The notes under the pieces: model-generated | Told to the model about the DNA's origin: nothing | The model's input: only the letters and a program-made list of their open reading frames with translations | Databases searched by the model: none | Assembly: GCA_004764695.1 (NCBI GenBank) | Contig: SMSO01000035.1 | Location: 310,001-374,000 of the forward strand | Source of the DNA: Schizochytrium sp. TIO01 | Lineage: Eukaryota; Protista; Bigyra: Labyrinthulomycetes | Reading direction: 5' to 3' | DNA: 64,000 nt | Program-made: the position numbers and the translations under genes | Shown: one piece after another, positions 25,029-63,493 of the stretch | Numbering within the stretch: position 1 is the stretch's first letter | Layout of the letters: each line of letters starts with the position of its first letter

Positions 25029-26135
25029 ATGAGCGCTGTAGTTCGAGTGGCGCGTAGAAGCCGCCAAGAGGCCTCAGGGTCGCTGGATGAACATGACTCT
25101 GGGAGTGCAGCAGACCCTGCGTCGCCACGCAAATCAGCCACAGACTCAAGCTTGCGCAGGAAATGGCGAGAAGTTGTGCAGCACCAGCGTAAGTTTGATG
25201 GCCGTGGACGCACGGACTCGGACCAGAGCCAGGACAGCCAAGAGGCAAATGCAGCACACAAAGACTGGGAAGATATAGAGGACCCAAGACGCACAAACAG
25301 CATGCGCAATCGCTCATTAAGACTTTCGGCAAGGCTGCGCAGATCAATGGCCATTCGGAGGCGACCCACATCAGCTCCTGAAGGCAAAGCCAAACGAAAA
25401 CTCATGGTCCGCTTCAATGAGCAAGTCGATGTTCTCAATTACGACGTTCCCTCTGACGACGAGGATGATGAAGAAGATGGCGAAACAGCCAACGCTGAGG
25501 AGGAATTTGATGAGGAGGCAGAGGCAGCGGCCGTGGCCGAACTTTTCAAAAAAATGGGCATTAATCAGAATGGTCGTTCAAGAAATGGGAGTTTCATGAA
25601 GGGCTGGCCCAAAATGCCTCGTAATCGTGGCAGTATATACCGTGAAGCAGAAGATAAAGAGCTTATAAAAGAGCACCAAAAAGCTCGTCGCAAGGCGAAG
25701 CGCCGGGCTGAGAAACGACTTCGTAGTCTTGAGTACCTTCGCGAGGTGGAGTTTTTCGATTCTATTCAGGACTGGTGTCGTCGAGAGCTGACTGATGCTA
25801 CCTATGCTGGCGCTCCTATTGAGGAGTTTCTCCCTCAGAAGCGCGCGGCATCTGCCCGCGAGCATCATATCAGCTCATATGAAGAGCTTGTACGCAAGTG
25901 CAGGCGGTTTGTTGATGAGCGCATGTACGAGCCGTCCAGCTTGGAGCAGGACAACTCGGCTTTTGCCATTCACACAGAGGAGATCATCGCGAGTCTAGTG
26001 CGCGACTGCCTCGAGGGCTTCCTCAAGTACCGTATCGAAAAGACAAAGCGGGAAATGGACGCACTTTGCCATGACTGCTTCTACATTGCGCGTGAGATTG
26101 TTCTTGAACGCAGAACAGTCTTACAATCCGAGTAA
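25029..26135 (+). CDS. Hypothetical protein (368 aa), disordered and charged N-half, RVxF-like PP1-docking motif, helical C-terminal region
   Basis: Long GC-rich ORF, first ATG at 25029. KRKLMVRFNEQVDV is followed by an acidic tract. Several RxxS/RRxS sites. Confidence 0.75.
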   Translation: MSAVVRVARRSRQEASGSLDEHDSGSAADPASPRKSATDSSLRRKWREVVQHQRKFDGRGRTDSDQSQDSQEANAAHKDWEDIEDPRRTNSMRNRSLRLSARLRRSMAIRRRPTSAPEGKAKRKLMVRFNEQVDVLNYDVPSDDEDDEEDGETANAEEEFDEEAEAAAVAELFKKMGINQNGRSRNGSFMKGWPKMPRNRGSIYREAEDKELIKEHQKARRKAKRRAEKRLRSLEYLREVEFFDSIQDWCRRELTDATYAGAPIEEFLPQKRAASAREHHISSYEELVRKCRRFVDERMYEPSSLEQDNSAFAIHTEEIIASLVRDCLEGFLKYRIEKTKREMDALCHDCFYIAREIVLERRTVLQSE

Positions 26136-28781: not shown

Positions 28782-30086
28782 ATGGGCGACTCCGAGGATG
28801 CCGGGGGGCTTCGGCTCATTGCAGCTCACCTGGCAAAGGTGAAACTAGCGGCGGCAGAGCAGGAGTTCTCCATGAGAACACGAATCTCGGCCCTGGAACG
28901 CCAGCTGGCTGCAGCCGGCGCAAAGCTTGAAGAGGCGCAAAGCGACGCTGCTAGCTTCCAGCGACAGGTGAAGCAGCTCCAGGCCCAGAACACCTACAAA
29001 GCTCTCGTACAGGAGCGCGAGAAGTGGAAGTCCCTCATCGACACGCTACGCTCCGATAATCGTGGACTCAGAGCACGAGTTGCCACTCTTGAACAGCAGC
29101 ACCAAAACGAAAACGAAAATCAACACCAAGACCAAAACAAGAACCGAAATCATACCCAGCAGGTTCAGAATCCGGAGCAACCTCAAGTTGAGTCTCAGTA
29201 CCAGCAGCAGGGCACTGTGCTGCATGTTTCAACTCATCAAGCTCAAGATTGTGATGGCGTCGAAAAGAAAAGATCAGGAGATCCCAGAGATACAAAGGTG
29301 GAAGAGACTGTCCCCGGAAATGCCGAGAGTGTTAGCGAAATGTCTAAAAAGTACCCCAGCCAACCTGAGGGTGATAAAAAGCTTAACAAGGATGGAAATA
29401 CCGCCAGTGGTAGTTCTCTAAATGCCGATAGCCCCCGGCAGTTTGGGGGGGCAATTGCAGAAGAGCCTAATGAAGGTAGGGCCGTTGAGGCAATGCGCTA
29501 TGCGATACGTAGGACGCCATCACAGGGATCTGAAAAGCTACTGGTGCGAACATTGAGCAACACGTCAGCGTACTCACACTCGTCTGTGGCCTCAGCTCAA
29601 GGGGGGGCTGGGTGTGCATGGATGGGAGCCTCGCCGATTAATGCAAGAGACGCAGTAGCTATGCGGAACGCAGCAATAACAGGCTCGCCATCGGGTGGAA
29701 TTGGCCTTCTCGACGGTCGTATTCGCAAAGATTCCCTCTTTGACAGCACGTCTGAGGTATTGCAGCTCAAGTCTGAAATCAGCTTCCTAAAACACGAACT
29801 CGAAACGAAAAGCGTAGAGATCAACGCATTGCGCGCAAAACTTGACCGAGAACTCGAGCTCAAATGGGAACGAGACCACCGCGGGGGCGGAGGTTGGCAA
29901 AGGTCTCTTTTTGAGAGCTTCGCTGAAGTGCTGGCGCCGTATCCGCACGATGAGCAACCTGTCGAGGACCCTCAGCCTGAGCATTACGATGATGCGCACA
30001 GGTCCTTGTCATCTCCTTCAAAGCGAATACCAGGTCTCTCCCCCTCGTTGAACCACCCTAATGTAGTGGAGTCCGCGAGTTTCTAG
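28782..30086 (+). CDS. Hypothetical coiled-coil protein (434 aa) with N- and C-terminal coiled coils and a Q/N-rich disordered linker
   Basis: Long ORF with heptad-patterned segments at about aa 15-105 and aa 325-362. Confidence 0.8.
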   Translation: MGDSEDAGGLRLIAAHLAKVKLAAAEQEFSMRTRISALERQLAAAGAKLEEAQSDAASFQRQVKQLQAQNTYKALVQEREKWKSLIDTLRSDNRGLRARVATLEQQHQNENENQHQDQNKNRNHTQQVQNPEQPQVESQYQQQGTVLHVSTHQAQDCDGVEKKRSGDPRDTKVEETVPGNAESVSEMSKKYPSQPEGDKKLNKDGNTASGSSLNADSPRQFGGAIAEEPNEGRAVEAMRYAIRRTPSQGSEKLLVRTLSNTSAYSHSSVASAQGGAGCAWMGASPINARDAVAMRNAAITGSPSGGIGLLDGRIRKDSLFDSTSEVLQLKSEISFLKHELETKSVEINALRAKLDRELELKWERDHRGGGGWQRSLFESFAEVLAPYPHDEQPVEDPQPEHYDDAHRSLSSPSKRIPGLSPSLNHPNVVESASF

Positions 30087-45502: not shown

Positions 45503-46861
45503 TCATAACGAGATCAGGCTTTGCGCGGTTGCAAAAAAAATTATTGTCATAAGACATACCATGACGTTGTTGAGATTCTCCCGCAAATTAAACATGTGCG
45601 GTTCTATTGTGGTAACACTCAGGCCAGAGTTATTCAACAGTAAACGTCTCTGGATAAAATCTTGTACTACTTCTGCGGATAAAAGAATGATCCCACGAAG
45701 GCAGACGTGTAGAACTGACATTTCAATGTTGAATAGATGTAAAGCAATTAGAGAAAGGGCAATCGCGCATGTAATTACAAGTTTTTCGCCAATCGACTCA
45801 TCATGGATATGAAGTATAAGTCTCTCACTTGAAAGAGCTGCCCTTATTACCAGCCATTGATGGATGACACTTTCACTTTCGCTCGTAAGCTGCATGGTAT
45901 AGACCCTTTTACGTATATAACGAGTTGCCTGAATATTGACGTAGGTACCTATCACCTCTGCGATGCTTGAGACCAAAGTGGCTAGAACAAAGGTTCTCAT
46001 AGATGAAACAAACATGATCGCAATCTGCCCAATCATATAAAACGCAACCTTGACTAGGATAGATTGGAAAGAAATGACATTCCGACTTGACCCTTTAGGG
46101 AATCCATAAAGTAATATAAAACTAAGGATATCCGCAATCAATATTCTGCCTGCCAAAAGCGAAATCACAGGGTATGCTACACCAGTAGCAAACCATTCAA
46201 CCACCCAGGAAGAATGACTAAGAGTTGATGCAATATAGCCATATCCTACTATCACCATGATAGAAGTAACGGAGCATAAACCAGTAGTAGTCGCAACAAC
46301 AAAGGAAATGCGCAAGAGCTTTCCATAAAAAAAGAGTTGTGCGACTAACATACTCAAAAATGTGCTAATGCCAAAGCTTAAGCTTATGTATGCAATAGTT
46401 GGATATATCCTCCACGGAAAGCCGCTGGCAACTGCGATAGAAAAGGTGATAGGAAATGTCATAAGCATTGCCAACGCTGACAAAGAACTTTTTAAAAAAC
46501 TCAAATTAAACTCTCTGTATAGGTTCCCTAGAGCTATTGAAAACTGCACCATTCCGGCAAGAAATCTAACCATTAAGTTGTAGCCTCTTGCAGGACTGTC
46601 TAACAACAATTTTGCGCACAAGACTTCATTTGAAATCACCATCATAACTGAAATACATATTGTAGGCAATAAGTACACTTGCCATGCTAAAATATGCCTT
46701 AGTTCGGCATGCCATGAAACTGGACCTGGCGCCGCATTGATCAATTCAGTTAAGCTGTCTGAGCGAAAATTTCGGCTTGTGGTTCTAAGCTCCAATGGTC
46801 CCGGTGAAAAGCACGGTTCAAACCCCTCCGGAGCGACCTTACTACTCGTGGTGGTTGTCAT
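45503..46861 (-). CDS. Uncharacterised multipass (~10-11 TM) membrane protein, array member A (452 aa)
   Basis: Intronless ORF with family motifs FRSDSL, GFPW, YPVISLLAGRILIADILSF, SILVKVAFY..GQ, ERLILHIHDESIGEK, EVVQDFIQRR. Confidence 0.9.
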   Translation of the reverse strand: MTTTTSSKVAPEGFEPCFSPGPLELRTTSRNFRSDSLTELINAAPGPVSWHAELRHILAWQVYLLPTICISVMMVISNEVLCAKLLLDSPARGYNLMVRFLAGMVQFSIALGNLYREFNLSFLKSSLSALAMLMTFPITFSIAVASGFPWRIYPTIAYISLSFGISTFLSMLVAQLFFYGKLLRISFVVATTTGLCSVTSIMVIVGYGYIASTLSHSSWVVEWFATGVAYPVISLLAGRILIADILSFILLYGFPKGSSRNVISFQSILVKVAFYMIGQIAIMFVSSMRTFVLATLVSSIAEVIGTYVNIQATRYIRKRVYTMQLTSESESVIHQWLVIRAALSSERLILHIHDESIGEKLVITCAIALSLIALHLFNIEMSVLHVCLRGIILLSAEVVQDFIQRRLLLNNSGLSVTTIEPHMFNLRENLNNVMVCLMTIIFFATAQSLISL

Positions 46862-47802
46862 GATTGGATTTGCTGGAGCACGTTCGGTGACAATGTATTC
46901 GCTTGAAAGAGTACATGCACAGCCAGAATGTCAGTACTATCTTCTAGCTAGAGAACAAACTAAGGCAACGGATCTCTTGTTCCAACTTTTTAATCTATTT
47001 TTTCCTTAATTTGGTCACAAATTCTCGAGAACTATGATGTGACAACCTTATAAATAAAGTTTTCGAAGGAAACTAATGCTAGTATCAGAGTTTATACTGT
47101 GAATGGATGCGCAAGGACGCCATGTGCAACGTCGGATACTTATCCCGATGTAGTTCGTTCCGGCACGGTTTGGAATAATAGAATTTGTTTATTTTTCTAA
47201 TATATATCATCACTGAATAGCCCTTCTGTTTATGCAGAGCGAAACAAAATTTCGGTCATATAAGAACGATTGGTCCATACTATCTTGAAGTAGATTCAAA
47301 GAGGTGCGCTGATTGCTTGCTTTTGGCCGCAATCATTATGATCCACATTGTTAACATTTAAACTGCACAAACCTTCCTTGTTACACAGATGCAATGGAAT
47401 CATACAATTTCAACAGAAACGACACTGGTTTACATTTAGCTATAAACGCTGGGGGGGATGGCTCGTTCAAGGCTATACCAAAGCCTCTGATCTACTGTAT
47501 GTATTGCAGAATAACTTCTCCTGTGAAGCGTGCAGAGGTAGTCTGACAAGGATGGCGAACTCAGGAGAAGAGAAAGAGGATGATATATGAGTTATTGGGG
47601 TTTCGGGTCTGGATACAGGCAGGGATGAATGTATGATGTCAGTCCATTACACAGGATGTGTCGGACATGAGAGTTTGGTTAGGTTAGGCTAAGTGAGGTT
47701 AGGCAGTAGCTGTATATTACTTCAATAGTATGCTAGCTGGTATGTGATGCATACTTGACGCCAAATTATCTTGGAATCCTCCGAAAAGCTGTGATTCTTT
47801 CT

Positions 47803-49275
47803 TTAATTAGTCGAGATAGATAATAAGTAGACTGCATATGTGGTGTTTGCAGCAGTCAAAATCAGTGTTATGAACGAAACTGTCTCCAAGAGGGAAGGGA
47901 ATCGAGGCTGTAATATAGTCAAACTCTCCCCAGATAAATAGTAAAGTAACCTTCGTTGAAGAAGATCTTGACCCATTTCAGCAACCAGTAAAATCATACC
48001 TCGAATGCAGTAGTAAGTTGGTGGGTACGTAGAGGTTAAACCTAAGGCTGAAACTGCTACAATAAGCCCCGCTGTACTAAAAATCACAAGCTTCTCACCT
48101 ATAGCTTCATGATGGGTATGAAGAATAAGCCTTTCACTTGATAGAATTGATCTAACTAGCAGCCATTCTTCTACAATTCCCTCATTGTCTGATTCACTGG
48201 TCGGTAAATTTTCTACTTTGCGTTTGAGAATCTTGGATATTTTGATATTTAATGCAGTCCCCAATATCTCAGTGATTATGTTCATTCCAATCGAGAAGAA
48301 AAAGGTATATGGAGAAGAGAGGTTAATGATTGCGAGTTGCCCAGCAAAATAAAAGTCTGTCTTTACCAGAATTGAGAAAAATGTCATTACCTCCCTGATC
48401 GAACCTTTCTCAAAGATCCTGAGCAGTAAGAAACTGAGGACATCCCCAACGATAAAACGACCAGCTAGTAAGGAGAGAAAAGGGTATAGAAGACCAGTTA
48501 TCAACCATTCAATTTTCCATGTTGCTGCTTTCGGAAATATATACGTGTATTCTAGAATGAGTATCTTTGCCAAAAGGCTTCCGCTTCCTACCGTTGCAGC
48601 AACAGCGAAGGTCCTTTTTTCATTCCATCCCTGTCCATTCAAAAGCTGGGCTATGTACACGACAATGGTTGAACTTATTGCGAATGCCGAGGAATAGTAA
48701 ATCAGGGCGGTGTGTGGGGTCCTGAGAAAATTATTAAACAAAGCTGGAATTATGAATCCGAAGGTTGTCACAATCTTCGTAAAGGCAATTACCAGTAAAG
48801 AAACACCTCGTAAGCCAAGCGTGTGGAATAAGCAAACTAGCGAAACAGAAAACGCTACAATTGCGAACGAGAATCCAATAGCTGGATTTTTCACCTCAGA
48901 TCCGCTGCTGGATAAATCTTGAATATATTGATTCAAAGAAAGGCTTGCACCAGACAATATCATAATTGGAAAAAGTAGGACTTCCCAATGTAGAAGATGC
49001 TTTATTTCAGCTTTCAGGGTTACGTATTCCGGTGCAAGTCTGTTTTTGAGCTGGACAATGCTTGCGGAACGAAAGCGCTGAGTTTGGTGCCTTCCATGTA
49101 GCTCGCTCTGGCTTGAAATATCCACGCTGGTACTTGTGCTCTTTTCATCTTTAGATTCTTTACAAGGCTTGTTGTTAGCTAGTTCCAAGTTATCTGAGAG
49201 CTGGACGTCAGAAATAACATGGTGCACACCTTCCACCAGGGAGTACGGGGTAACACGAGAAGGTGCTAGACTCAT
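47803..49275 (-). CDS. Uncharacterised multipass membrane protein, array member B (490 aa)
   Basis: First ATG at 49275 (MSLAPSRVTP). Motifs FRSASI, YPFLSLLAGRFIVGDVLSF, SILVKTDFY..GQ, ERLILHTHHEAIGEK, EMGQDLLQRR. Confidence 0.9.
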   Translation of the reverse strand: MSLAPSRVTPYSLVEGVHHVISDVQLSDNLELANNKPCKESKDEKSTSTSVDISSQSELHGRHQTQRFRSASIVQLKNRLAPEYVTLKAEIKHLLHWEVLLFPIMILSGASLSLNQYIQDLSSSGSEVKNPAIGFSFAIVAFSVSLVCLFHTLGLRGVSLLVIAFTKIVTTFGFIIPALFNNFLRTPHTALIYYSSAFAISSTIVVYIAQLLNGQGWNEKRTFAVAATVGSGSLLAKILILEYTYIFPKAATWKIEWLITGLLYPFLSLLAGRFIVGDVLSFLLLRIFEKGSIREVMTFFSILVKTDFYFAGQLAIINLSSPYTFFFSIGMNIITEILGTALNIKISKILKRKVENLPTSESDNEGIVEEWLLVRSILSSERLILHTHHEAIGEKLVIFSTAGLIVAVSALGLTSTYPPTYYCIRGMILLVAEMGQDLLQRRLLYYLSGESLTILQPRFPSLLETVSFITLILTAANTTYAVYLLSISTN

Positions 49276-51526
49276 TCTTGTCGAGGGCGGACACAACACG
49301 ATGGAATGTTCTTTGACAAAGGTTAATCATGAATCGCATTGAACAATCTGCCCTGATTGCAAAACAATATGATACTGCACAATAAGATGCAGTATTCTGC
49401 AATCTGGTACAATTACAAAAGGCAGCTCCCAAATCAATGTGATTAACAACCGAACTATTTTGCAATGTAAACGACGGTCTGAGGTTCGTGGTTTACAAGA
49501 GATTTCACCAGAAGGTTTGCATAGTTTGAGATATACATCATTTCTTAACGAAAGTTTACTTCATGGAATACAACAGGCTAAGCAATGATTACTATTCAGA
49601 ATAAACTGTGACTGGTACGCTAAGGAGACAAAACGATTAATCTCCCTTTCTGGTGCGCCTCCTTTCTTTGTCTTTTCTTGTTGCAATCCTTAGCTTCGTG
49701 ATAAACATGTACACTTTATTATGTTGCTTAAAGTGTTGTTGAAAGAAGCGAACCCGACATCAAGCATGGCTTTATAAAGGGATGAGAAAACTAGATGCAG
49801 CCTTCCTATGGAGGCTGCAATTTTTCCGTTGAAGGTGAGTTATGACGCCGCACCCAGTGTCCTATTACTACATTAGAAGCGGGCATGGTTGAACCGGCGT
49901 AGTAACAATTTTTTTTTTTAAGTGTGGTAGAATAGCTCCCATACTAGACCTAGCAGTAAGAGGAGCTTGACGAACAGTTCCAGTGGTTAAAGAGGGTAAA
50001 GTGCAACCCTTGCTCTGAATTAAAAATTAGGCAACAGGCAGTTTTTCTTTCTTTCTTTAATTAAGCAAGATTCTGCTTCAGCTCTTCAACTACATCCAAC
50101 CGTTGCTGGCTACTACAGACAAAAACAATAATATTTAAATTTTAAAAAATTAAAGAATAGCTTTTATTAATTTATTTATTTCCAAATTCGGGGCCGGTGG
50201 TTGAACTTGCGCATCTTGTCCACGAAGGGGAAAAGAATTATTTGGATAAGATCTTCCTTGTATCCGATTCGGTGTGATTTTTCTGACCAACTTTCTTTCT
50301 TGGCATAACGGAACCACCCAACTAAACGTCCCCGCAATGTTGATTTTCTACTGTCATAAGGTGTGCAGAATACTCAATGGAGACAGGTATCCGGAACTTC
50401 CCCGTAAATGGATAATAACAATGGAGAATGAGTGCCCATGTAGTGAATGACATTCTGAATTTCTACAAGAGCATTCGTGACACGAAGAACCACCAAAAAT
50501 TTGAGACTACCAGTTGTGTGGGTCACTACTACCTCGCTGACATTCTATTTTACAATGAGTAGTTTATCAGGATAGTAAACCGTGCTATGGCTCGTTTGTT
50601 CGAATACTTTCGGTAGTTGAAATTAAAGAGAAATCGCAGATTTCGCGGTCAACTATGCAACTTTTTGATTCGTGCTGGGTCACGACTCTGAAGTTGAGGC
50701 GATGTAATATGGCTCAACCTGTCAGAACATTTCACCAAATTCTATTTATAAAATTTTCATGTGTGTGGATCATTGCGAACATTCTGAATTAGCCCAAAGA
50801 TTATCACTCTTAATATTGGCCTGAATTAGAATCTTGATGAAACCATTGTAACATTTAAAGTTGGCTTTTCTAAGTACAGCATGTAAGGGTATAGGTCTTA
50901 CAATTTGCATTTTGTTTTTTTAACGAAAAAACGAAAAAAACGAAAAAGTGTTCAGAAAGAAAGAAATTTAAGTATCTGTAGAGTTTTGAAACATATTCTG
51001 AAGTGTAAACTGCTCGAGCAAAAAAACATACAACATACGAGTCTTTAGTTATTTCAACAAGCATCCAAAAACAATAGGCTATCTGGCGTAAAATATACTT
51101 TGCCGAGAACACCTATTGAAGAAATGTCTAATTACATATAACATGAGTTGTTGGGATTCCTACATACATATGGTCCGCAAGTGATGCTTGAGTGAACGTA
51201 TATTCATTATGTCCGGTAGCTATCATCGCTTGACATGTTTGGAAGAAACATGATTAGAACTTCCAAACATGATTAGAAATGGATAGAATGGAGCTCTGCA
51301 GAACCAGAACCAAAAACTGAAGATTTGAAAGAAAACCTAAAATACACAACTTTCTGAGAGATTTGCAATACCTTTCGCATCTCATAAATTAATCGAGACC
51401 TAACCTTTTCTCGAGATGCATGTTTAGGTCAGAAAATATTGTCTTTCAAGCATATGCTCTTTTAAGGTCTTCAACGTGCCACTGATACGCTCATAGAAAG
51501 ATTAAATCAATAGAACTAAGCTTGGC

Positions 51527-52975
51527 TTAGTCAAGTCGAAGTATGTTGAGAATCATCAATATAAACAGGAGCATCGCTACATTTTGGCGAGCATTTATGA
51601 GTTCTGGCAGGATTCCAGTTAGACTAAAGCCAGTGCAGCGGTAAAGAATCCTTCGTTGAACTAAGTCCTGGAAAACTTCGGTAACTAGAAGTATTATACC
51701 TCGATAACAAATTACAATCGGAGGTAGTTTGCTGCCTATATTTTGGGAGGTGATGGTCGTATTATTATTATTCTGAATTAAGTCTGGCAAAGAATTCAAT
51801 AATGCAACACAAGTTGACGCAACGATAACTAACTTTTCAGCAACAGCTTCATCGTGGCTGTGGAGTATGAGCCTTTCTTTTGTGACTGAAGCTCTTGTTG
51901 CGAGCCATCTCTCGAAAAAATTATCGCTATCTTCTTGCAGACAATTCGTTTCTGCTTTGAGTTTGATACGAATTGTCACTTGGATATTTACAAAAGTGCC
52001 AATAAGCTCAGCTATGCTTAAAATCGTGATTGACATAACGAAAGCATAATTCGACTGAATTAGTAAAATTGCAGTTTGACCTGGAAGGTAGAATGCAATC
52101 TTGACTAGTAGTGAATAATAGCTCAGAACAGCAGTTGCAGAACCCTCAGGAAAAGCGTATAGAAGAATAAAACTATAAATATCAGCGATGAGTAGTCGTC
52201 CAATCATTACTGAGACCATCGGGTAGACCACACCAGTCACAATCCATTCAAGAACCCACCAATCCAGTAGAGGTACTATATAAGCATATTCTTGAATAAA
52301 GAACGTTGATAACCCGGCGCCAAAGCCCATTAGAAATGCAACTTTGAAACCTTGCAAAAAATTTGACATGCAAGAAAACGAATTTTCTTGCACACGAGCA
52401 TTCAATTGATGTGCAACGAAAACATTCGCAACAACTGCTGCTAAGACAGTATGGGAGTATAATAGAATATTATAATGCATTACACTCCACGGATATCCAT
52501 GTTTGTGCGCTACAATCAACATTGAGAATGCAACTGTGAGCTTTACTATTGATGCAGCAGCAATATGAGACCACGCCAGGCGGAAATCTAACCAAGTTAT
52601 CACGATGGCTAGCGCATAAAGCAGAAAAGCAGCTCCGGAACTGAGTAACAGAATATTTGACTTGTCATGGCTTTTCAAAATTAAGAAAACCATATTATTG
52701 CAAAAGACGCCAAGGCATATTAGTACCGTGGATGGAATTAGCATCGCCTCCCATAGTAGAATATGTTTTACATCCTCCTGCCAGGTCACATTCTTCGGAG
52801 ATTGGTTTCCTATAGCCCGAAGACTCTGCGACCGGAAATTACGTGAGCGAAATGATGTTGATGAAGTGGCAATACTATATTTCCTTGATTCATAGTTGAG
52901 CTCATTGTTTTCCTGTGTAATGTCTTTAGCCTCTTCAATGACCAGCTCAGCTGGAAGTATGCGACTACCTCCCAT
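51527..52975 (-). CDS. Uncharacterised multipass membrane protein, array member C (482 aa)
   Basis: First ATG at 52975 (MGGSRILP). Motifs FRSQSL, GYPW, YPMVSVMIGRLLIADIYSF, SLLVKIAFY..GQ, ERLILHSHDEAVAEK, EVFQDLVQRR. Confidence 0.9.
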   Translation of the reverse strand: MGGSRILPAELVIEEAKDITQENNELNYESRKYSIATSSTSFRSRNFRSQSLRAIGNQSPKNVTWQEDVKHILLWEAMLIPSTVLICLGVFCNNMVFLILKSHDKSNILLLSSGAAFLLYALAIVITWLDFRLAWSHIAAASIVKLTVAFSMLIVAHKHGYPWSVMHYNILLYSHTVLAAVVANVFVAHQLNARVQENSFSCMSNFLQGFKVAFLMGFGAGLSTFFIQEYAYIVPLLDWWVLEWIVTGVVYPMVSVMIGRLLIADIYSFILLYAFPEGSATAVLSYYSLLVKIAFYLPGQTAILLIQSNYAFVMSITILSIAELIGTFVNIQVTIRIKLKAETNCLQEDSDNFFERWLATRASVTKERLILHSHDEAVAEKLVIVASTCVALLNSLPDLIQNNNNTTITSQNIGSKLPPIVICYRGIILLVTEVFQDLVQRRILYRCTGFSLTGILPELINARQNVAMLLFILMILNILRLD

Positions 52976-53849
52976 GCTGCAGCAAGGACACAAAAGCTTG
53001 CATGGCTTTTATCCACCTGAACAAGTTTTGAAGCTATAGCTGTTCTGTGCCCCTTGGAACTTGTTTGTGTCTCTATCTCAAAGAAAATAGAAGGTATAAC
53101 TCAGTTGCCCACATCTTGTGTTTAATATATCCGTTGAGCAATCTTTTGGCAATGTAGACTTTTATGACGGACACTTTTCAAAATAACCTTATAAGCCTAG
53201 GTATGACAATATTATAAAACCTAAATCCAAGGAAATTCATTAACTCTAACGTTTTGTCATTAAGTACTGAGTGTATAAGCTAATCAGCCTGCACATAGAT
53301 ATGCTTCCTCATCCTGCGTGAAACAAAATCGAAGACGAGATGAGATGCTTTTATTACTATTACTATTACCATTTAATTCATGGATGATCAATCTCCCAGT
53401 TCTGTCCAGCTGGTAAAGCGGTCATGAGCTCTTCGAGCAAAAACAGTGCTCCGGCTTCGTCCTTGCGATGTATTTTGCTGCGTGGCTTATTTCGATTTTC
53501 TTTATTTAAAGCAAATCATATTGGTTACGTGCATTATAGCTTTGGTAGTATTTCATAAAATTAAGAAAGTAATGAGCTGTGTTTAACAATACATGTATTT
53601 AGGAAATGTTATGATGATACTATGGAGACAAGGACTATCCGTGGTTGAATTGAGAAAAGCTGCTCGTACTTTTACAGAAAATTGCAAATCAAAGATTCAA
53701 AGAATCCCCAGGCTCTTTACATGAGCAAGATCCGCGTACCGTACCCGAGGTTCTGAATTTACGAATAAAGTTTCAACATGTGGAAACTCCAAACATCCAC
53801 TACGAACATTGTTAATTTGACTCAAAATCCAACGCAGAAGGCGATCGGT

Positions 53850-55232
53850 TCAACTATTTAATGCAGTCCTCGATAGGTTCTGTGCCATAAATATAACACA
53901 CGTATTACTGAGGTTCTGCATAAAGCTGAGCACGCGAGGCTGTCTTGCTGTCGCTGACAGACTCGCAACGCAATTTAATAGGCGCCGCTGGAGAAAGTCT
54001 TGGCAAAATTCTGCAAAGAGAAGGACAACTCCCCTGAGAAGTAAACTGTTGATGGTCAAATTTTCCGCGAGCTCTTTGTTAACTAAAAGGACGAGGCACG
54101 CTGCGAAAATAATAAGTTTTTCTCCAATAGCTTCATCAATCATATGCATAATTAAGCGTTGATTAGAAAACTCTGAGCGAACAGTACACCACTGGCCAAT
54201 CAAGGTGCTTTCTCCAAACCTTTCCTTGTACTTTGTAGAATTTCTTTGGAAATGACGCATCATGATGATGTTGATGTAGGTTCCGAAAAGTTCTGTGATG
54301 CTTGAAATTGTGATGGCAATATAAAAGGATGATGAAGACTTCACACGAAGAATAGAAATTTGTCCCGAAAAGTAAAAGCAAGTCTTAACGAGGATAGAGT
54401 AAAAGCTAAGTAAATCAGTGGTAGAGCCATGAGTAAAAACCGAGAGAACCATAAAGCTAAGCACGTCTGCAATCAGTAATCGACCAACCAACAAGGATAT
54501 TAAAGGGTATATTAAGCCCGTGACAAGCCACTCAAGAACCGATGAATCTAAATTTGAAGAAATGAAGGAATATTCGAGGATTAACAAAATCGAAGTCCAC
54601 GAGCTAGAAGCCATAAACGTAGCCTTTAGTAGACGATTGAAGGTACTGTCTGGCTCTCCTGCTAAAATCTGAGCAACGAACAGATTACATCCGGATGCTG
54701 CGGCAAATGTAATGGCCAAGTAAAGGAAATTCCAATGTGAGCTCCATGGAAACCCTTGAGATATTGCAATCCCAATGAACGAAATGAAGCAAACAATTTT
54801 GCTGAAAATGATCCAAAAAATTGGTAACCACCCAACTTCGAAATTTCGATACATTGTGATGGATGTTAAAGAAAAACACAAGTATCCTATTGTGTAAAAT
54901 AGCAGTCGAGCATCAAAGGGCCACATATCTCGTAGTTGTTGCAGTGTGAAAGCCATCAGAATATTCATTGCAACAATAAGTATGCTCGAAGGGAGGAGGC
55001 ACAGTTCCCAACGAATCAAATTTTCTAAATCTTGAGTCCATGTTGTTGTCTGGATTGCTCTTTTTCCAAGCTCTACTAAGCTTTGTGATTTAAAAAACCT
55101 TGCACTTGCAGCGGGTGTTTCTGATTCATCACGCTTTGAAGATGTCCTACACACGGGACAACGATGGGCACTAGCTTCGATAATTGATGCATTAGCTTCT
55201 GGAGCAGGTGAAACTTGTGCAGAACTGCCCAT
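53850..55232 (-). CDS. Uncharacterised multipass membrane protein, array member D (460 aa)
   Basis: First ATG at 55232 (MGSSAQVSP). Motifs FKSQSL, GFPW, YPLISLLVGRLLIADVLSF, SILVKTCFY..GQ, QRLIMHMIDEAIGEK, EFCQDFLQRR. Confidence 0.9.
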   Translation of the reverse strand: MGSSAQVSPAPEANASIIEASAHRCPVCRTSSKRDESETPAASARFFKSQSLVELGKRAIQTTTWTQDLENLIRWELCLLPSSILIVAMNILMAFTLQQLRDMWPFDARLLFYTIGYLCFSLTSITMYRNFEVGWLPIFWIIFSKIVCFISFIGIAISQGFPWSSHWNFLYLAITFAAASGCNLFVAQILAGEPDSTFNRLLKATFMASSSWTSILLILEYSFISSNLDSSVLEWLVTGLIYPLISLLVGRLLIADVLSFMVLSVFTHGSTTDLLSFYSILVKTCFYFSGQISILRVKSSSSFYIAITISSITELFGTYINIIMMRHFQRNSTKYKERFGESTLIGQWCTVRSEFSNQRLIMHMIDEAIGEKLIIFAACLVLLVNKELAENLTINSLLLRGVVLLFAEFCQDFLQRRLLNCVASLSATARQPRVLSFMQNLSNTCVIFMAQNLSRTALNS

Positions 55233-55480
55233 GGTCAAGTTGGGGATTTGCTTTTGCTGCACCACGGACACATCATTTACCAAGTGTAAACTTCGCCCTT
55301 GTATACCATGAAGGCACTTATCACCGGCCCTTGTAAATCTTTGAATAAAGCACAGCGATAGTACCAAAATTCGCCATCAGGAACTTCCGGTTGCCGTAAT
55401 ATGGAATGTTCTCTATTTATTTTTTTAAACTAAAATGTTCTTTTTGAAGATCCGTTACCTTGAAGGTACCGCCGCCGGGT

Positions 55481-55501
55481 GGGTGCGAAAGTTTCGCACC
55501 C
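55481..55501. repeat. Perfect 10-bp inverted repeat with 1-nt spacer (GGGTGCGAAA-G-TTTCGCACCC)
   Basis: The arms are exact reverse complements. Lies about 250 bp upstream of member D. Confidence 0.85.
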
Positions 55502-56151
55502 GGTCAGGGATTCTTTTACCTTTAACTGCTACCTAATCCATACCATTGCGATCTAGTAAGTTGAATCTTCAGGAGATACAGTGTGCTGTTGCCTCGTTTG
55601 CGTACTTTATATACTACCTGTGCGAAGGGTAAATGGGATAAATTTATCCTCTCGTTGGTATAGGTTATATAGACCTGCAGTAGAAGTCAACTGTTACAGA
55701 AGGAGACCCAACAGACCCTTGCCTAGACCTTGAAAAAGATACAGTATTATTAAAGTCATTTACACGTAGGAATTTTCGGGGGGATCCATATTTTCTGGTA
55801 TCTAGTCAAGTTCATTTTGCCAATTAATCAAAAAGGTAGAAGCCCAAAGCAAAATGAAAGACCATCAAGGCTTCAAGCAAGGTTTCGAGCGTTAGTCTTT
55901 ATATGAAATGCAACAAGAACATCTCACGTAATCAGATTTCATTTCAATCCTTAAAAAAAGTTCGAACTAGTAGATTTAAAAAACGTATTATTGTTAAGGA
56001 AGTTTTGTACCGGCTACTCTAATTATATCGGCAAATGCTGCTTTTGCTGTGCTTTCCATATTTGACAACATAATGTACCACAATAAATATTAGGAGAGCT
56101 TGGGTGTTTTCTAAAACTCTTCGAGACAATATAACCTTTACAATTTGAGCG

Positions 56152-57513
56152 CTATCGCGATTGTTGCGTAGCGGCCACAAAAAGGCTGCGCGCCATAAAA
56201 ATGACACAAATATTACACACATTCTCTCGAAGTGAGAGAAATTTAGGAACCATAGCGGTAACGGTAAGGCCGGCAACTTTTTGCATAAGTCTACGCTGTG
56301 TAAGATCCTGGAAAAACTCAACCACAATTGTAACAACACCCCGAAGTACAACTGAAGTCATATCCTTGTCAACCGCAGATCTGTATACATCAAGTATAAG
56401 GAGAAGAGATGCTGAGTAGATCACAAGCTTTTCCCCTATAGATTCGTCATGCGTGTGCATAACAAGACGTTGCTCAGCATATTTCGTTCGTGTAGCCAAC
56501 CACTGAGCAAAAAATCCGTCAATGTTTAATGTATCCTCATACTTTCTTGCTGCTGACTTGAAAAACATTGTAAGTTTGCAGTTAATGTACACTCCGAGAA
56601 GCTCGGTTAGGCTTGTGACGGCTAATGCTATGACGAAGGAGTAAGATGAAGTCACGTTCAAGATGGAAACTTGGCCTGCAAAGTAGAAGTTGCTCTTTAC
56701 AAGAATTGTGTAAAAACTCATCAAATCTATGACAGAGCCTTCTGGAAACGTTGAAAGTACCATGAAACTTAACAAATCAGCAACGAGTAGACGACCTAGA
56801 AAGAGTGAAGCAAAAGGGTAGGCTAGCCCTGTTACTAACCATTCTAGCATCCACCCATTTAAATGTGTTGTCATATAAGCGTATTCCATCACAACAAAGC
56901 ACGATGCGAATGATGAACCTAAAGTCAGCACCATTTTAAAAACCATGCTTTTCCAACTTTGAGGTAGACCTGCAAATCCTTGAGCGACTTGAAGATTTAA
57001 AGCTGCTGGCACACAAAAGGCAACGCCTAGAAAAATTTTATCTGTATGCCCTTGCCACGGGAAGCCCTCAATTACTCCAAAAGCTACGATGCCAATGTAT
57101 GAGCCATACTCTACAGCTATGATGCACACTAATATATACCAAGGAATTTGTAAACCTATGTACATATAAAGCATGGTTATCGAAAAACAGATAAAGCCAA
57201 ATGAGAAATGAGTTAAGACAAATTGATCAGCCCATAGGTTTTGCAAGGCACTCTGCATAAGGCCATACAGTGCTACACATGCACAGATTATCAAGATTGA
57301 GGGAATGAGTTTAATCTCCCAGGCTAAGAGATTCAAAATCTCATGTTTCCATGTTGCATGTATCTTAATTCTCTCTCCAAGAGCTACCAAGCTACTGGAC
57401 CGAATAAATCGTTCACTGACTGTGCGACTTAATTGGGTTGACTTTGGTTGCAAGACGTACTCCCTTTCTAATGGATCTCCTTCTGAGGTCGGTGAAACGC
57501 GCGACGACTGCAT
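56152..57513 (-). CDS. Uncharacterised multipass membrane protein, array member E (453 aa)
   Basis: Starts MQSSRVSP. Motifs FIRSSSL, GFPW, YPFASLFLGRLLVADLLSF, TILVKSNFY..GQ, QRLVMHTHDESIGEK, EFFQDLTQRR. Confidence 0.9.
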   Translation of the reverse strand: MQSSRVSPTSEGDPLEREYVLQPKSTQLSRTVSERFIRSSSLVALGERIKIHATWKHEILNLLAWEIKLIPSILIICACVALYGLMQSALQNLWADQFVLTHFSFGFICFSITMLYMYIGLQIPWYILVCIIAVEYGSYIGIVAFGVIEGFPWQGHTDKIFLGVAFCVPAALNLQVAQGFAGLPQSWKSMVFKMVLTLGSSFASCFVVMEYAYMTTHLNGWMLEWLVTGLAYPFASLFLGRLLVADLLSFMVLSTFPEGSVIDLMSFYTILVKSNFYFAGQVSILNVTSSYSFVIALAVTSLTELLGVYINCKLTMFFKSAARKYEDTLNIDGFFAQWLATRTKYAEQRLVMHTHDESIGEKLVIYSASLLLILDVYRSAVDKDMTSVVLRGVVTIVVEFFQDLTQRRLMQKVAGLTVTAMVPKFLSLRENVCNICVIFMARSLFVAATQQSR

Positions 57514-59053
57514 TGCTTGTGCATTGCAAAAAACAGTGAAAAGGTAAAGGAGATCTTGGTATTGCTGCTGTCTATTTCACCATTCGAACCCTTTCTTGCG
57601 TCAGAAAACATTAATAGGCAATAAAATACAACATTAAGGCTTACTCTTACGCAGAGAGAGTGTGCCTACTAGTACCTCCTTTTACTTCCAAGCAAACAAT
57701 CAACGGATCACTTGCTTTGAAGACATCTTACAATGTATCTATCCAAAAACGTAGAGACCAACTTGCTGGTCTGCCACGCTACCCCAGGCCGTATTCAGAT
57801 TTTCTTTAAAACTCGAGCCACTTAATACTACAGGAATGTCTTTGGCGAGTCAATTTTTTCCGCTGTGAACTTGCAATCATACAGATTCTCCCCCAACAGC
57901 GATGCAGAGACTTAAAATAATATGTTAGTCGTTATTTCTGTCATGATTGCAAAAAAGGAGCGTAGTCTGAGGACATTTTGAGTTGAGGAAGTTTCCCCTG
58001 CTTACTAGACCATGCTGGCGAATCCCTCACTAGAAAAAGTAGAACCGGTTGGAACTCCACTATCAAGAAGTAGTCTGAGTGAGAATGCTGCATGATGCAT
58101 GTTAGGCAACACAATACCATTGAAATTAATACCAGCATGAGGTTCTCAGGAATAGTTGTTTCCGTTACATAACTCTTCAACCTTTTACACAAGGACAATT
58201 GATCACAAGTGTAAAAAAAACTAGTGGGAGGAAAGTCAATGCCAACTGAGCCCGGGCCAGGAACGAATCAACGATCACCAACTTGCTATAACTTGTGAAG
58301 CCTGATGGAGAAGAGGCTTTATCTTAGAAACCTAGGTAAAACTCAACCTCAAGCGAGAAGTTGTTACACTACCACTGTTGCATACAGTACATGAATGCCT
58401 TTGGCAATGTCTTTGTGTGCGTTTTGCGGACTTGGAAGATTACACACTCAATCAATTTTGAATATGTTACCGTTTTTACCCATCAGTCAACTCGTTCTTA
58501 TTAATTAGCTTGTATTTAAAGAAATAATTAACTTTTAAAAAAAAATCGAAACCCTAAAATAGTTGTTAGTTGCTCACCTCGGCATTTTTGGGCAAACGCC
58601 GGGCAGTCCTCAGCATAGGCGACGGATATTGTAATTTAATCGGAAGACGAGTGAAATTTGATATTTATAAGAACCATTTAGTGACTAAAGATAATTTACA
58701 CAGAGTACTTTAAACCAACAGTTTGAGACGGCAGCCTGCCGATAGCATCATGTACGCGTATTTAGTTTCTGCTTCAATTTGTCGAATGGAAACATCTACA
58801 ATAGTAACAACTGCGATGAAGCATGCACAGGATATTATTAAATAGTGACGAGCTGCTGCATTCTATACTCAATCGTGCAAACAATCTCGATCCTTATTTT
58901 GCCGTACGTGTAAACAACGCAGATACATATCCCTCAATGAAAACTTGAGGTAATCTTCTTTTGACAACAATAACTATTTTCTCAGAGTATGTGATTTTCT
59001 AAACTTTGTGGAAATATAAGTTGTTGTTTGCACGTACAGAAGGTTAATGCTAT

Positions 59054-60483
59054 CTAAGAATAGTTTGCAATAGCAAACAGTTTCCGAGATACAAGAACAA
59101 TGCATAAAAAGTTGACAATGTCTTTAAAATGTGGGAAATATGGACGCAGCCCAACTATACTGATCCCTGCGCACTTTTGCAATATGCGACGTTGGGCAAC
59201 ATTCTGTATGAAATCCAGCACAATTAAAATAGCGCATCGAATGAGAGTGGATCTTTGGAAACTTCCAGCAACTAAAAAGTCTTTGGTCATTTGCAAAGCG
59301 CACGCTGAAAACAAAACGATTTCTCCCCAATTTCTTCGTCATGTATGTGCAGAGCAAGCTTTTGGCGAGAAAGAGATGTACGCACAGTAATCCAGTCCAC
59401 TAAAAGAGGAAACCTTTGGAGATTTCCTTCATAGTATGTATGCGATTTGGCTGCGAAATGTTGCATGGTAGTGATATTGATGTACGTCCCAGAAATCTCT
59501 GCAATAGAATTCATAATTGCCGAAATAAAAAAGGCATCTCTCGACTCTAATTGTAAGATTGCTATCTGCCCTGCGAAGTAATATGTGCATTTTACCATGA
59601 TGGAGTAAAAGGAGAACACATTCTTCGAAGATTTTGATTGGAAAGTAGATAAAAGCAAAAAACTGAGGAAATCGGCAACAATAAAGCGTCCAAATCCTAA
59701 TGATATTGCCGGATAAACGAATCCGGAGACCAGAAACTCCACAACCCAATCATGTGATAATCCACAAAAGTATCCGTATTCTACAATAACAAACATAGAC
59801 ATTGCTGCACTGAAAGCTGTGAACGCACTTACAAAGAGAGAGTGCAACAGGTTCCTTTGCATACTTCCTGTGAGAAATTGAGCAACTTGGGTATTAACAG
59901 CACCTGAACCACCATATACAAGACTCGCAAATAGTACGCTTGTGTGCAATGACCAAGGAAAACCGTGCGCTTTAGCAACACTGAGGAAAGTTACGATTGT
60001 GCAAATTAATGAAGATAGAGTAAGGACGATTTCCCAGAATTTGAAACCAAAATCTCGATACATAATGCCTAATGTAATTGAAAAACATGATACAATTGTT
60101 GAATAAACTACAACAAAATGGTTATCAGTCCAATATCCCGCGCTTTTTCTATACAATAGTTCATCCATACTCAGCAAAAAACATAAAAGCAGAATACTGG
60201 GGAATACTTTGAATTCCCAAACAAGCATGTTCAGAATTTCTTCTTTCCAAGAGTGATGATTGTCAACCAGTTGTCCTATTTCGGCGAGGCTAGCTGATTT
60301 GATGATTTCAAGACTACGATCTGCAAGGCGAAATGACGATGTGGAACGAACAAACTTGTTCGCCCCTTCAGGCGAACCAACAATGTTTTCGGCATGACTT
60401 AACGGTGCGACTTGGGTCCCTCTGGCAGGGCCCCATTGTGCTGCTATTGTAGGGGTCAGATTATTGATCATCTTTTTAAGCAT
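59054..60483 (-). CDS. Uncharacterised multipass membrane protein, array member F, frameshifted at about 59320-59322 (476 aa if restored; sequencing error or young pseudogene)
   Basis: ORF 60483-59287 carries the family motifs up to HIHDEEIGEK. ORF 59314-59054 carries the rest (DFIQNVAQRRIL...GIS). Adding one A after GGG GAG AAA gives GEKIVLFSACAL. Confidence 0.85.
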
Positions 60484-62041
60484 CCACTCTTCTGTTCCTC
60501 CATAATTCGGTTGCCATGAAGCATTTGAAGTTTTGCATAGGCCTCAGAGCGCTCAAATATAATCCAGCAAAGGTTGTTAACGGCATAAAATTGGTACAGA
60601 GGCACGTTCTAAACATTTACTAGGAAGATTGTGGTGGTAGTTAGTACGTTATCTTTAAAAGGTGAAAGGCATTGTGCACTCTGGGTAAAATGTATGAGCA
60701 AGAGTACATGAAATCAGACAGCACACAATGCGTAGGTCTTCGTAAGAAGACAGTACTCACTAGTCCGTCGCTAATTCTAACTGGTAACGTGCAATCATTT
60801 GTCTTTAGATCTCTAGAGAAGTTTTCTTATTTGGGACAAATCCAGTTTATTTTTTAGTTTTGAACGCGGTCTGATTGGTAGATGGCATCAATTCATCACA
60901 CTTTTGCTTTGCCGTGCATTTGCTACTGTACGTTCTTTGTCTTACTTGGTTCATTGCACGTCTTGCGCTTCTTTTGCTTTGGGTGTAGATTATGCATATG
61001 TATTAGAATGGTTGCTTTTTAAACAATTATTTACTACCTTGTTCTATTTTCTAAAACATGACTTTTAGGAAAATAAAACATATATAGAAAAAATGGCATT
61101 TTGTCACTACTACTATTACTATTACTAAGCGCCCAACTACTACAAGAAGAAGAACAAGAAGAAAGAGACCATAAAACGGCGCATGTCTCTTATACACTTA
61201 ACCCCGCTGACAAAGGTGGCTTGCAGCATGTCGATTACAGTAAATAGTAGCTTGTGTCTAATCCTATAATAAGGGCTTTTTCGCTGAGAGCAACTAGGAA
61301 AGGACAGCTTGGTCCTTGATTGCCAATAAAAACTCTTAGAATGAACACTTATACTCCAAGAGACTTGCATTCTATAGGTATCAAGATACCGAATTTAACT
61401 ATTTATAATGAAGCATACCAGTTCGGTTTAACTATAAGTTAGTTCCAGTTAGTGCATTCTATTCAGCGCTTTTGCAAATGTGTTACACGCCTGTCTGGAT
61501 TTGACAGCAGCTCCTTTCCTATGCATGTATCCTCCCACTCGATGTTTTGTTGTCGTTGCAATCGCGAAGTGCGGCTATGGATCGATGCTAGTCACCATTC
61601 AATAGATCGATATAAATTTAACTTTTAAAAAAGAGATGTTTTAAATCCTCCTTTCTTTCCTCTTCTGATATACAATAACATCTAGCATTCTAAAAGAATT
61701 GACTATATATGCATTTCCAATGGTATAATATTTTCAGTGCAGTACGTACAATGGTGGAAAGTTGAAATTGCAAAGGCCGCAGTAAACGGAATATGAATTA
61801 GAAAACTTAAATTTTGCTACTGTTATGGCCTAGGGGCCGATGTAAGCTCACAACATCAAGTAGAAGTACATCGTACCGACTTTTTTTTATGAAGAACAAT
61901 TAATTGTCGGTAGCGAGGAACATGATAGATTTTCTGCTGGAATGTGCAACCTTTCCCCCCTATTTCGGTTGCACGCTCATAGTTTACCTCTTAACATAAG
62001 ACAAATCTTTTGGATGAGCGATGATTTCACAAATTCATTTG

Positions 62042-63493
62042 TTAGGTCCAATTGCGATCACTCACCGTCGCCCTAAAAAAATTTAGTGTCAAAAGAATGC
62101 TGCACAAAATCAAAAGGCTTTCTTGAAGTGGTAATATTTTTGGTTTGATCACAGCCAGATTTAGCCCCGTTAGTTGGTAAAGGATCCGTCTTTGGCATAG
62201 GTCCTGACCGTGTTCTACAAATGCAAGGATCAAGCCACGAATGCAGACCCCTACTGGAGATACACCATAGTTTATAGACATGTAAATTGCTACAAATGTT
62301 GCAGCAAATATAACAACTTTTTCTCCAAGGCCTTCATCATGCATGTGTAAAAGAAGGCGCTCAGTAGCAAGGTCTGCTCGGATAACAAGCATTGTCACAA
62401 ATGTGGTTCTCGGTACTGGACCTTCCTGTCGAGATTTTAACTTCTTCTGCATATATAATGTAGCTTTAATATTTGCATATGTACCCAAAAGCTCCGTAAG
62501 AGATGTAATGAATATTGAGAGAGCAAATGCATAAGGTGATTGTAGAAATAGAATTGCAGTCTGTCCCGAAAAGTAGAATGCAATCTTGACAAGAAGAGTA
62601 TATCCGGACATGATCGTTCGACGAGATCCGTTTGGAAACATCCATAGCAACACAAAACTAACGACATCTGCGACTAAGAATCTTCCTACGAGGATGCAGA
62701 TAATAGGGTATAGGATTCCTGTAATGATCATCTCCATGAGCCAATCTGTAATGTGTGATACGACATAACCATATTGAAAAATCACAAATACAGATGACCA
62801 GCCGACCACACCCATCAGCAAAGAAGTTAGTATTGTTGGTTTTGAACACGCCCTTCCTCCCTCGATTATTTGTGCAATGAAACTCTGAAGAAAAGCGCTA
62901 ATTCCAAATATGAGACAAAGAATGAAAAGAGACATTTGATCATTCCATGGGAAACCTTGTTGTACACAGACCATCAACAGGCTTGCAGTGCAAGCTGACT
63001 TCCCCAAGACAATGAGCGCAATGCTAAAGGGATGAAGCTCAAAATTGAGATAGGTCAGAACAATAAACACAGTGAAGTAAACGTCGCCCATAACAAAGTA
63101 TACCATTAAAGGGGACGCCGGAGAGTCATCTTTCAAGAATGGATCAATATAATATGTAAATGCATCATTCAGACCTATGCTTACCACGAGCATCAAGATA
63201 AGGGGCACAAGCTTGAAAGTCCAGGTGAAGATGTGAATAATATCTTGTAGTAGCGTAGGTGTGGCTTTCGCATCGTTATGCAGCTCCAAAATACTTGGCG
63301 TACGAAATTGTCTGCCATTTATAAATGTTGGTGTAAAGTCACTTCCTATTTGACTCTTGTCTGGTTCAGATTCGGTGCTTCTCTGAATGTTGCTTTGCTG
63401 ACTTTCAAAGCTCTGCTCCCTTTCGCAAAGCTGTAGACTCTCGCAACATGATTCAGGTGCAGGGGTAACACGAGCTGTTCCTTTTCCAGACAT
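62042..63493 (-). CDS. Uncharacterised multipass membrane protein, array member G (483 aa)
   Basis: First ATG at 63493 (MSGKGTARVTP). Motifs FRTPSI, GFPW, YPIICILVGRFLVADVVSF, TLLVKIAFY..GQ, ERLLLHMHDEGLGEK, EHGQDLCQRR. Confidence 0.9.
   Translation of the reverse strand: MSGKGTARVTPAPESCCESLQLCEREQSFESQQSNIQRSTESEPDKSQIGSDFTPTFINGRQFRTPSILELHNDAKATPTLLQDIIHIFTWTFKLVPLILMLVVSIGLNDAFTYYIDPFLKDDSPASPLMVYFVMGDVYFTVFIVLTYLNFELHPFSIALIVLGKSACTASLLMVCVQQGFPWNDQMSLFILCLIFGISAFLQSFIAQIIEGGRACSKPTILTSLLMGVVGWSSVFVIFQYGYVVSHITDWLMEMIITGILYPIICILVGRFLVADVVSFVLLWMFPNGSRRTIMSGYTLLVKIAFYFSGQTAILFLQSPYAFALSIFITSLTELLGTYANIKATLYMQKKLKSRQEGPVPRTTFVTMLVIRADLATERLLLHMHDEGLGEKVVIFAATFVAIYMSINYGVSPVGVCIRGLILAFVEHGQDLCQRRILYQLTGLNLAVIKPKILPLQESLLILCSILLTLNFFRATVSDRNWT

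Follow-up and report, generated by a model that had tools for sequence, protein, structure and literature searches.

What kind of membrane protein is encoded by the tandem gene array that lies between 45.5 and 63.5 kb of the window analysed here, a stretch of 64,000 nucleotides from Schizochytrium sp. TIO01 (contig SMSO01000035.1, positions 310,001 to 374,000)? The original prediction, made from the DNA alone, had described seven same-strand, intronless paralogs filling about 18 kb, and had proposed that they form a lineage-specific sensory receptor or ligand-gated channel/transporter family, plausibly used by motile zoospores. The open reading frame (ORF) list and end-to-end alignments confirm seven long, intronless, paralogous ORFs on the minus strand (Table 1), which share 31-41% protein identity pairwise over their full length and about 35 invariant columns, including the C-terminal motifs said to be kept in all seven. 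The best-supported answer, drawn from predicted structures, is that the family is related or analogous to the pore module of the TMEM16/OSCA/TMC superfamily, in a stripped-down and highly diverged form.

Sequence comparison did not lead to this superfamily. Pfam searches with 17 family members at E<=10 returned nothing beyond scattered noise from domains of unknown function, with no match to the Anoctamin (PF04547), RSN1_7TM (PF02714) or TMC-domain (PF07810) profiles, whereas the genome's true anoctamins score E 1e-122 to 1e-33; the family profile likewise matched nothing among all PDB sequences. Comparison by hhalign of the whole and C-terminal profiles with the genome's own three anoctamins, six OSCA-like proteins and one TMC-like protein reached a probability of 0.1, a value that is uninformative because the same shallow profiles barely link the known families among themselves (anoctamin to OSCA at 33%, to TMC at 3%).

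The predicted fold was more telling. An AlphaFold2 model of the whole of copy 4 (8-sequence alignment) is all-helical, with a predicted local distance difference test score (pLDDT) of 80.1 and a predicted template modelling score (pTM) of 0.78; after a disordered segment (residues 1-48) and a short amphipathic stretch come 11 long helices, in agreement with the 10-11 transmembrane helices (TM) anticipated for the family. The C-terminal half modelled alone (residues 195-460, 21 sequences) gave seven TM helices at pLDDT 89.2 and pTM 0.85. A Foldseek search of the PDB with the whole-protein model found no hit above a TM-score of 0.25; it took VIA-align or the half-protein model to bring out the superfamily signal. 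With VIA-align, the whole-protein model had nhTMEM16 or TMEM16K in nine of its ten top rows and TMC-2 in the remaining one, while Foldseek with the half model placed TMC-2 first (probability 0.97, E 0.05, TMq 0.40) and TMEM16K and OSCA3.1 lower down. These matches cover 75-85%, the seven helices map one-to-one in order, and in every TMEM16 entry the matched part of the chain is TM3-TM9. In the predicted model, the helices share the order and packing of the TMEM16 pore/groove module, and the seven-helix pore module common to OSCA/TMEM63 is equally present. We consider it likely that the conserved core adopts the TMEM16/OSCA/TMC fold, and the models suggest homology with this superfamily. The expectation that no named family would be matched thus holds for sequence and fails for fold. 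As to the proposed receptor or channel/transporter role, it is the channel/transporter part that is strengthened by the fold predicted for the conserved core; no housekeeping family was confidently matched, since the superfamily picked out consists of channels and scramblases with sensory members.

The alternative that survives best is a solute transporter or other membrane protein of independent, unsolved fold, whose likeness to the superfamily would reflect a generic helical bundle or AlphaFold bias. We judge this unlikely: two aligners applied to two models selected the three branches of one superfamily and almost no other membrane fold, with the coverage and one-to-one helix correspondence given above. 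MFS, LeuT, ABC and GPCR folds dominate the PDB, yet the far commoner MFS, LeuT, APC and ABC structures were absent from the high ranks.

If related, the array proteins differ markedly from all three known branches. They show no detectable sequence similarity to TMEM16 proteins (nhTMEM16, TMEM16A/F/K), which are Ca2+-activated Cl- channels and lipid scramblases, and measure 450-490 aa, compared with 876-1007 aa for the anoctamin ORFs of the same genome. They lack the N-terminal cytosolic domain, in place of which 48-90 disordered residues are found, and they lack TM10, which in TMEM16 forms the dimer interface; the last helix matches TMEM16 TM9 and the protein ends 2-10 residues after it. Four helices, not two, precede the TM3 equivalent, and the polar pair on the TM6 equivalent reads E...N (i, i+7) instead of N...E. 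Relative to the mechano- and osmosensitive cation channels OSCA/TMEM63, of which OSCA has no TMEM16-type acidic Ca2+ site, the family shows no sequence match to RSN1_7TM/PHM7 and is without the large cytosolic domain between TM2 and TM3, all inner loops before TM8 being 4-5 residues long. The TMC1/2 mechanotransduction channels are proteins of far greater size that operate together with auxiliary subunits. We know of no shorter proteins with the TMEM16/OSCA/TMC fold, and a literature search found no published account of such a minimal family. Should the fold be correct, these would be by far its shortest representatives, consisting of the pore/groove module plus four extra helices, and would define the minimal working unit of the superfamily and offer a small target for structural and mechanistic studies.

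The minimal family coexists with all three classical branches in one genome, since the assembly also encodes three canonical anoctamins, six OSCA/RSN1_7TM proteins that pass the cut-off and one protein with a TMC domain, each from a long intronless ORF (840-1365 aa; Table 1). A further, weak RSN1_7TM match below the cut-off (C34:1915467-1916096, on the contig of the array at a distance of 1.6 Mb, E 9.9e-4, 23 bits) lies in a 1211-aa open frame that may be a very diverged OSCA-like gene.

Conservation is distributed unevenly along the protein, as had been noted for its variable N-terminal and conserved C-terminal halves: mean pairwise identity is 0.15-0.28 in TM1-TM5 and 0.37-0.55 in TM6-TM10. 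Lysine and arginine are concentrated on the proposed inner side (13.3 versus 1.9 on the outer side), so that by the positive-inside rule the N-terminus is predicted to be cytosolic and the short C-terminus to lie outside. With array TM5-TM11 equivalent to TMEM16 TM3-TM9, the conserved helices are TM6-10, and TM5 is variable. Among the conserved positions (Table 1), E314, E367, K372, R400 and E408 are kept at 90-100% in relatives of 15-20% identity. TMEM16A binds two Ca2+ ions through E654 on helix 6, E702 and E705 on helix 7, and E734 and D738 on helix 8, assisted by N650, N651 and N730 (PMC7118279). In the array family, each of the three equivalent helices bears a polar/acidic pair, at TMEM16A-like depth and orientation as judged by helix order and not by superposition, and the pairs are spaced by 46 and 37 residues against 48 and 29 in TMEM16A. 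The E-x3-D-x2-[QK] pattern in TM10 also resembles E-x3-D-x2-K in TM8 of the genome's own anoctamins. Family-wide, each of these helices has just one near-invariant acidic residue. This likeness to the Ca2+ site, which follows from helix order, is suggestive, and the conserved acidic residues might instead be paired in salt bridges with K372, R400, R251 and K283. Just before TM1, at about residues 30-73, copies 1-6 and 8 contain R-x-[FI]-[RK]-S-x-S-[LIF] (window 55080-55100 in copy 4), which from its sequence looks like a basophilic-kinase phosphorylation site; its second serine is invariant in the paralogs, copy 7 has threonine at the first, and the site is not conserved in distant relatives.

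All eight copies of the family in the genome (seven in the window and one beyond it) also carry [K/R/Q]-[V/I]-x-P close to the N-terminus (Table 1), within residues 5-11 in seven of them and at residues 24-27 in copy 6. The motif recurs near the N-terminus of the related proteins P0016 (MRVAP, position 2), P0021 (MSAKVAP, 4) and P0024 (MVWSKVSP, 5) and in the second copy within Hondaea 087772 (VQIAP), while P0020 and P0022 carry V-x-P. It is under selection, because the flanking sequence is otherwise unconserved and variable in length. In animal cells, polycystin-1, polycystin-2 (N-terminal R6VxP) and rhodopsin depend on a (K/R/Q)VxPx signal, which binds Arf4, to reach the cilium (PMC3172256). 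The array motif is identical, family-wide and on the predicted cytosolic terminus of a multi-pass, channel-like protein, in seven of the eight copies within the first 5-11 residues as in polycystin-2 (PMC3172256); however, the Arf4-bound signal is known only from animal cells, and a motif of four residues can have other meanings. The genome encodes IFT57 and BBS1, so that its flagella are built with the customary membrane-trafficking machinery, and by analogy the motif fits a flagellar location.

On balance we favour the reading that the array encodes a new, stripped-down branch with the TMEM16/OSCA/TMC fold, probably acting as channel or scramblase and possibly flagellar. Each protein would begin with a disordered cytosolic N-terminus starting M-x(3-7)-[K/R/Q]-[V/I]-x-P, followed by four fast-evolving helices (TM1-4) and by TM5-11 in the predicted TM3-TM9 arrangement that forms the ion pore or lipid groove in TMEM16/OSCA/TMC proteins, with no cytosolic domains and no TM10 equivalent. 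Going by the models, the array proteins may work as ion channels and/or lipid scramblases. E314/N321, E367/E371/K372 and R400/E408/D412 would sit in the cytosolic leaflet on the equivalents of TMEM16 TM6, TM7 and TM8, where they would line the pathway or, by analogy with TMEM16A, bind a gating cation (Ca2+). The N-terminal motif would probably serve as a sorting signal and, if the analogy with animal ciliary proteins extends this far, could direct the proteins to the zoospore flagellum. The array itself would have grown by local duplication and still be turning over.

Hearing, osmosensing, Ca2+-activated chloride currents and lipid scrambling all depend on this superfamily. The array, of about 21 kb, would be a compact candidate locus for thraustochytrid zoospore sensing or membrane-lipid handling, one that could be deleted in a single step. 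The conserved (K/R/Q)VxP in a stramenopile family would further make it testable whether a ciliary sorting code predates the split between animals and stramenopiles. A bolder version of this explanation, which we find quite improbable in its entirety, would see a minimal, about 450-aa and probably monomeric TMEM16/OSCA/TMC branch delivered by VxP to the zoospore flagellum, where its few members would act as sensory channels (mechano-, Ca2+- or chemo-gated) with fast-evolving TM1-4 setting what each senses; the VxP signal would then be ancient and common with animal polycystins.

A zoospore chemoreceptor or ligand-gated channel repertoire, in which variable TM1-5 would form ligand pockets on a conserved TM6-10 signalling/pore core as in insect odorant and gustatory receptors (OR/GR), is very unlikely as an explanation in its own right. 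Like insect OR/GR and nematode chemoreceptor arrays, the locus consists of tandem duplicates with gene loss and with variable N-terminal helices on a conserved C-terminal core, and both the contrasting halves and the birth-and-death pattern were confirmed; the ciliary-type motif and the encoded flagellar transport machinery would also suit such a role. However, there are only eight copies here and about four in Hondaea, not tens to hundreds, and the outer loops have only 4-9 residues, so there is no extracellular binding domain. Nor was the seven-helix fold of insect OR/GR or of GPCRs found with Foldseek and the half model (Gr43a at probability 0.21 and TM-score 0.21, GPCRs at <=0.21), and copy 5 is present in ordinary culture-type runs. 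The chemoreceptor idea can nevertheless be combined with our preferred explanation of a TMEM16/OSCA/TMC-fold channel or scramblase, because members of the ANO-TMC-TMEM63 superfamily are known to take part in smell and taste (PMC13164078).

The family is restricted to few lineages, as predicted. An exhaustive HMMER search with the family hidden Markov model among 1.84 billion cluster representatives recovered only 23 proteins, from Schizochytrium, Hondaea, Mucochytrium and some further protists, and eight of the 23 are Schizochytrium's own copies. The next three matches belong to Hondaea fermentalgiana (FCC1311_087742, 087762 and 087772) and have consecutive locus tags on one contig of 119.5 kb, from which we infer that Hondaea is a second thraustochytrid genus with a tandem set, of at least four copies. 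The 890-aa model of FCC1311_087772 (GBG32553.1, P0004) consists of two tandem family members fused. The Met of 'MQAWRHQACSSVQIAPE', about residue 604, is the probable start of the second, and the N-terminal motif recurs at this place. The remoter members, at 15-27% identity and E 1e-26 to 1e-4, were found in Mucochytrium quahogii, among unnamed MMETSP transcripts, in metagenomes and in one Durusdinium (dinoflagellate) record. A word-index protein search returned essentially the own copies only, and this blank is no evidence, the prefilter being blind to the family. The nearest ESM Atlas clusters, a tentative lead, were unnamed Oomycota 'hypothetical/transmembrane' proteins (0.92-0.94 for copy 4, 0.85-0.86 for Hondaea) and a cnidarian cluster with PF28488; the ESM Atlas structure search gave no match with a poor query model (pLDDT 0.61).

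In a maximum-likelihood tree, the Schizochytrium and Hondaea copies form one clade (support 100/99), within which two Hondaea copies pair (100/99) and copies 4 and 5 are sisters (97/93), joined next by copy 6 (97/98); elsewhere the tree gives no resolved grouping, and its branches measure about one change per site. Since copies 4, 5 and 6 are also neighbours in the array and copy 6 is broken, the history of the array is one of old tandem duplication with continuing local birth and loss, as the original prediction had supposed.

Six of the seven genes in the window are intact, at the 450-490 aa foreseen for all; copy 6 is frameshifted in the assembly. One base is missing between 59319 and 59320 on the minus strand, directly after the G-E-K codons, which splits the gene into a 398-aa ORF and a C-terminal piece in another frame and removes the last helices; the second part gave a separate profile match at 59066-59323 in the genome search. 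An intact version exists in another assembly (P0008, 476 aa), which agrees with copy 6 at every one of the first 388 residues and has the sequence ...GEKLVLFSA... The deletion looks like a real, recent, strain-level loss, because the base is likewise missing from run X2, a second study's near-identical DNA, whereas in run X19, which comes from a related strain (98-99% alike), a single additional base behind 59319 brings back the P0008 frame. Between strains, copy 6 shows 9 nonsynonymous and 5 synonymous differences, compared with 2 and 4 in copy 5; these small numbers fit relaxed constraint on copy 6. Between the paralogs, at 31-41% protein identity, synonymous sites are saturated.

None of the sequencing runs covering the region is recorded as RNA, and five were guessed to be so. 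Copy 5 is covered by single collinear contigs in two probable RNA runs from two studies (X16 and X19, Table 1), which contain no splice joints and end near the gene borders, the adjoining DNA being bare or covered by low-depth fragments only. Because these contigs are collinear, jointless and bounded near the gene borders, copy 5 is very probably transcribed as one unspliced mRNA of about 1.7-2.1 kb. A candidate splice or leader at the X16 contig end was rejected because its 25 loose letters continue the genomic sequence with 2 mismatches. Copies 4 and 6 are represented by small low-depth pieces only. In run X15, also guessed to be RNA, contigs of depth 2-3 lie in intergenic DNA of the array (57549-57814, 58825-59030 and 55364-55755) and could be DNA carry-over, long untranslated regions or low-level intergenic transcription.

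A search of the whole 64 Mb assembly with the seven-protein profile returned the seven copies and one more, and no family copy elsewhere, so that the array has eight members and is the sole family locus in the genome. The eighth copy lies about 1 kb beyond the window, where a continuation of the array had been suspected, and extends its span to about 21 kb. The spacers measure 0.9-2.3 kb and contain no other ORF or gene, as anticipated, and no family pseudogene relic; no DNA repeats were found in the array except the conserved coding motifs, nor exact k-mers common to the eight upstream regions beyond shuffled expectation. Four of the ORFs opened with TTG or GTG in the mechanical list, and the first ATG, which in each lies 3-7 codons before [K/R/Q]-[V/I]-x-P, was taken as start. 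The coding sequence is AT-rich, as described before: the G+C content at third codon positions (GC3) is 0.36-0.40 in the array copies, compared with 0.43-0.60 in neighbouring genes and 0.375-0.40 in intergenic DNA.

Although this base composition, equal to that of intergenic DNA, the frameshift and excess of nonsynonymous differences in copy 6 and the low-depth coverage of copies 4 and 6 would suit a fast-evolving, weakly expressed cluster of decaying duplicates without important function, such a reading is exceedingly improbable, with seven of the eight ORFs intact after a divergence of about one substitution per site, several of the invariant columns kept in relatives of 15-20% identity, mostly synonymous differences and clear transcript contigs in copy 5, and an array that persists in a second genus. 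The family as a whole is subject to selection.

Table 1. Positions of the array copies and related features (window positions unless a contig is named; conserved residues by residue number)
Feature	Position	Strand	Length or product	N-terminal motif	Conserved core	Remark
Copy 1	45503..46861	-	452 aa	KVAP 46829-46840	45644-46198	own-genome profile match E 1.3e-182
Copy 2	47803..49275	-	490 aa from ATG	RVTP 49246-49257	47950-48510	99% identical to P0006, a protein from another assembly
Copy 3	51527..52975	-	482 aa	RILP 52952-52963	51650-52249	
Copy 4	53850..55232	-	460 aa	QVSP 55206-55217	53982-54533	structure-modelled copy
Copy 4, C-terminal seven helices	53850-54650	-	residues 195-460			
Copy 5	56152..57513	-	453 aa	RVSP 57490-57501	56290-56844	copy with transcript evidence
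Copy 5 transcript span	55494..57634	-	coding sequence, 5' leader of at least 42-121 nt, 3' tail of 180-660 nt			
Copy 5 transcript contig, X16	55494-57531					depth 21
Copy 5 transcript contig, X19	55970-57634					depth 17
Copy 6	59054..60483	-	(476 aa)	QVAP 60403-60414		frameshifted; 398-aa ORF 59287-60483, C-terminal piece in other frame to stop at 59054
Copy 7	62042..63493	-	483 aa	RVTP 63461-63472	62186-62734	
Copy 8	contig 374983-376332	-	449 aa	RIVP		outside window
TM6 (= TMEM16 TM4)	E234, G239, Y242-P243, G250-R251, D256, S259-F260					conserved residues
TM7 (= TM5)	V282-K283, G290-Q291					conserved residues
TM8 (= TM6, out to in)	E314, N321					conserved residues
TM9, cytosolic start (= TM7)	H363, E367, E371-K372					conserved residues
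TM10 (= TM8, out to in)	R400, E408, D412-x2-Q-R-R					conserved residues
Anoctamins	C31:6455304-6456953, C30:1228834-1230132, C30:3532918-3534690					
OSCA/RSN1_7TM loci	C3, C36 (two), C24, C6, C7					
TMC-domain gene	C34:4337154-4337471					

On its low side the array is flanked by a gene for a CRAL/TRIO protein on the opposite strand. For three plus-strand ORFs elsewhere in the window, at 28782-30086, 25002-26135 and 1182-2693 (434, 377 and 503 aa), Pfam returned nothing at E<=0.001; GC3 is about 0.53 in the first two, which are GC-rich.

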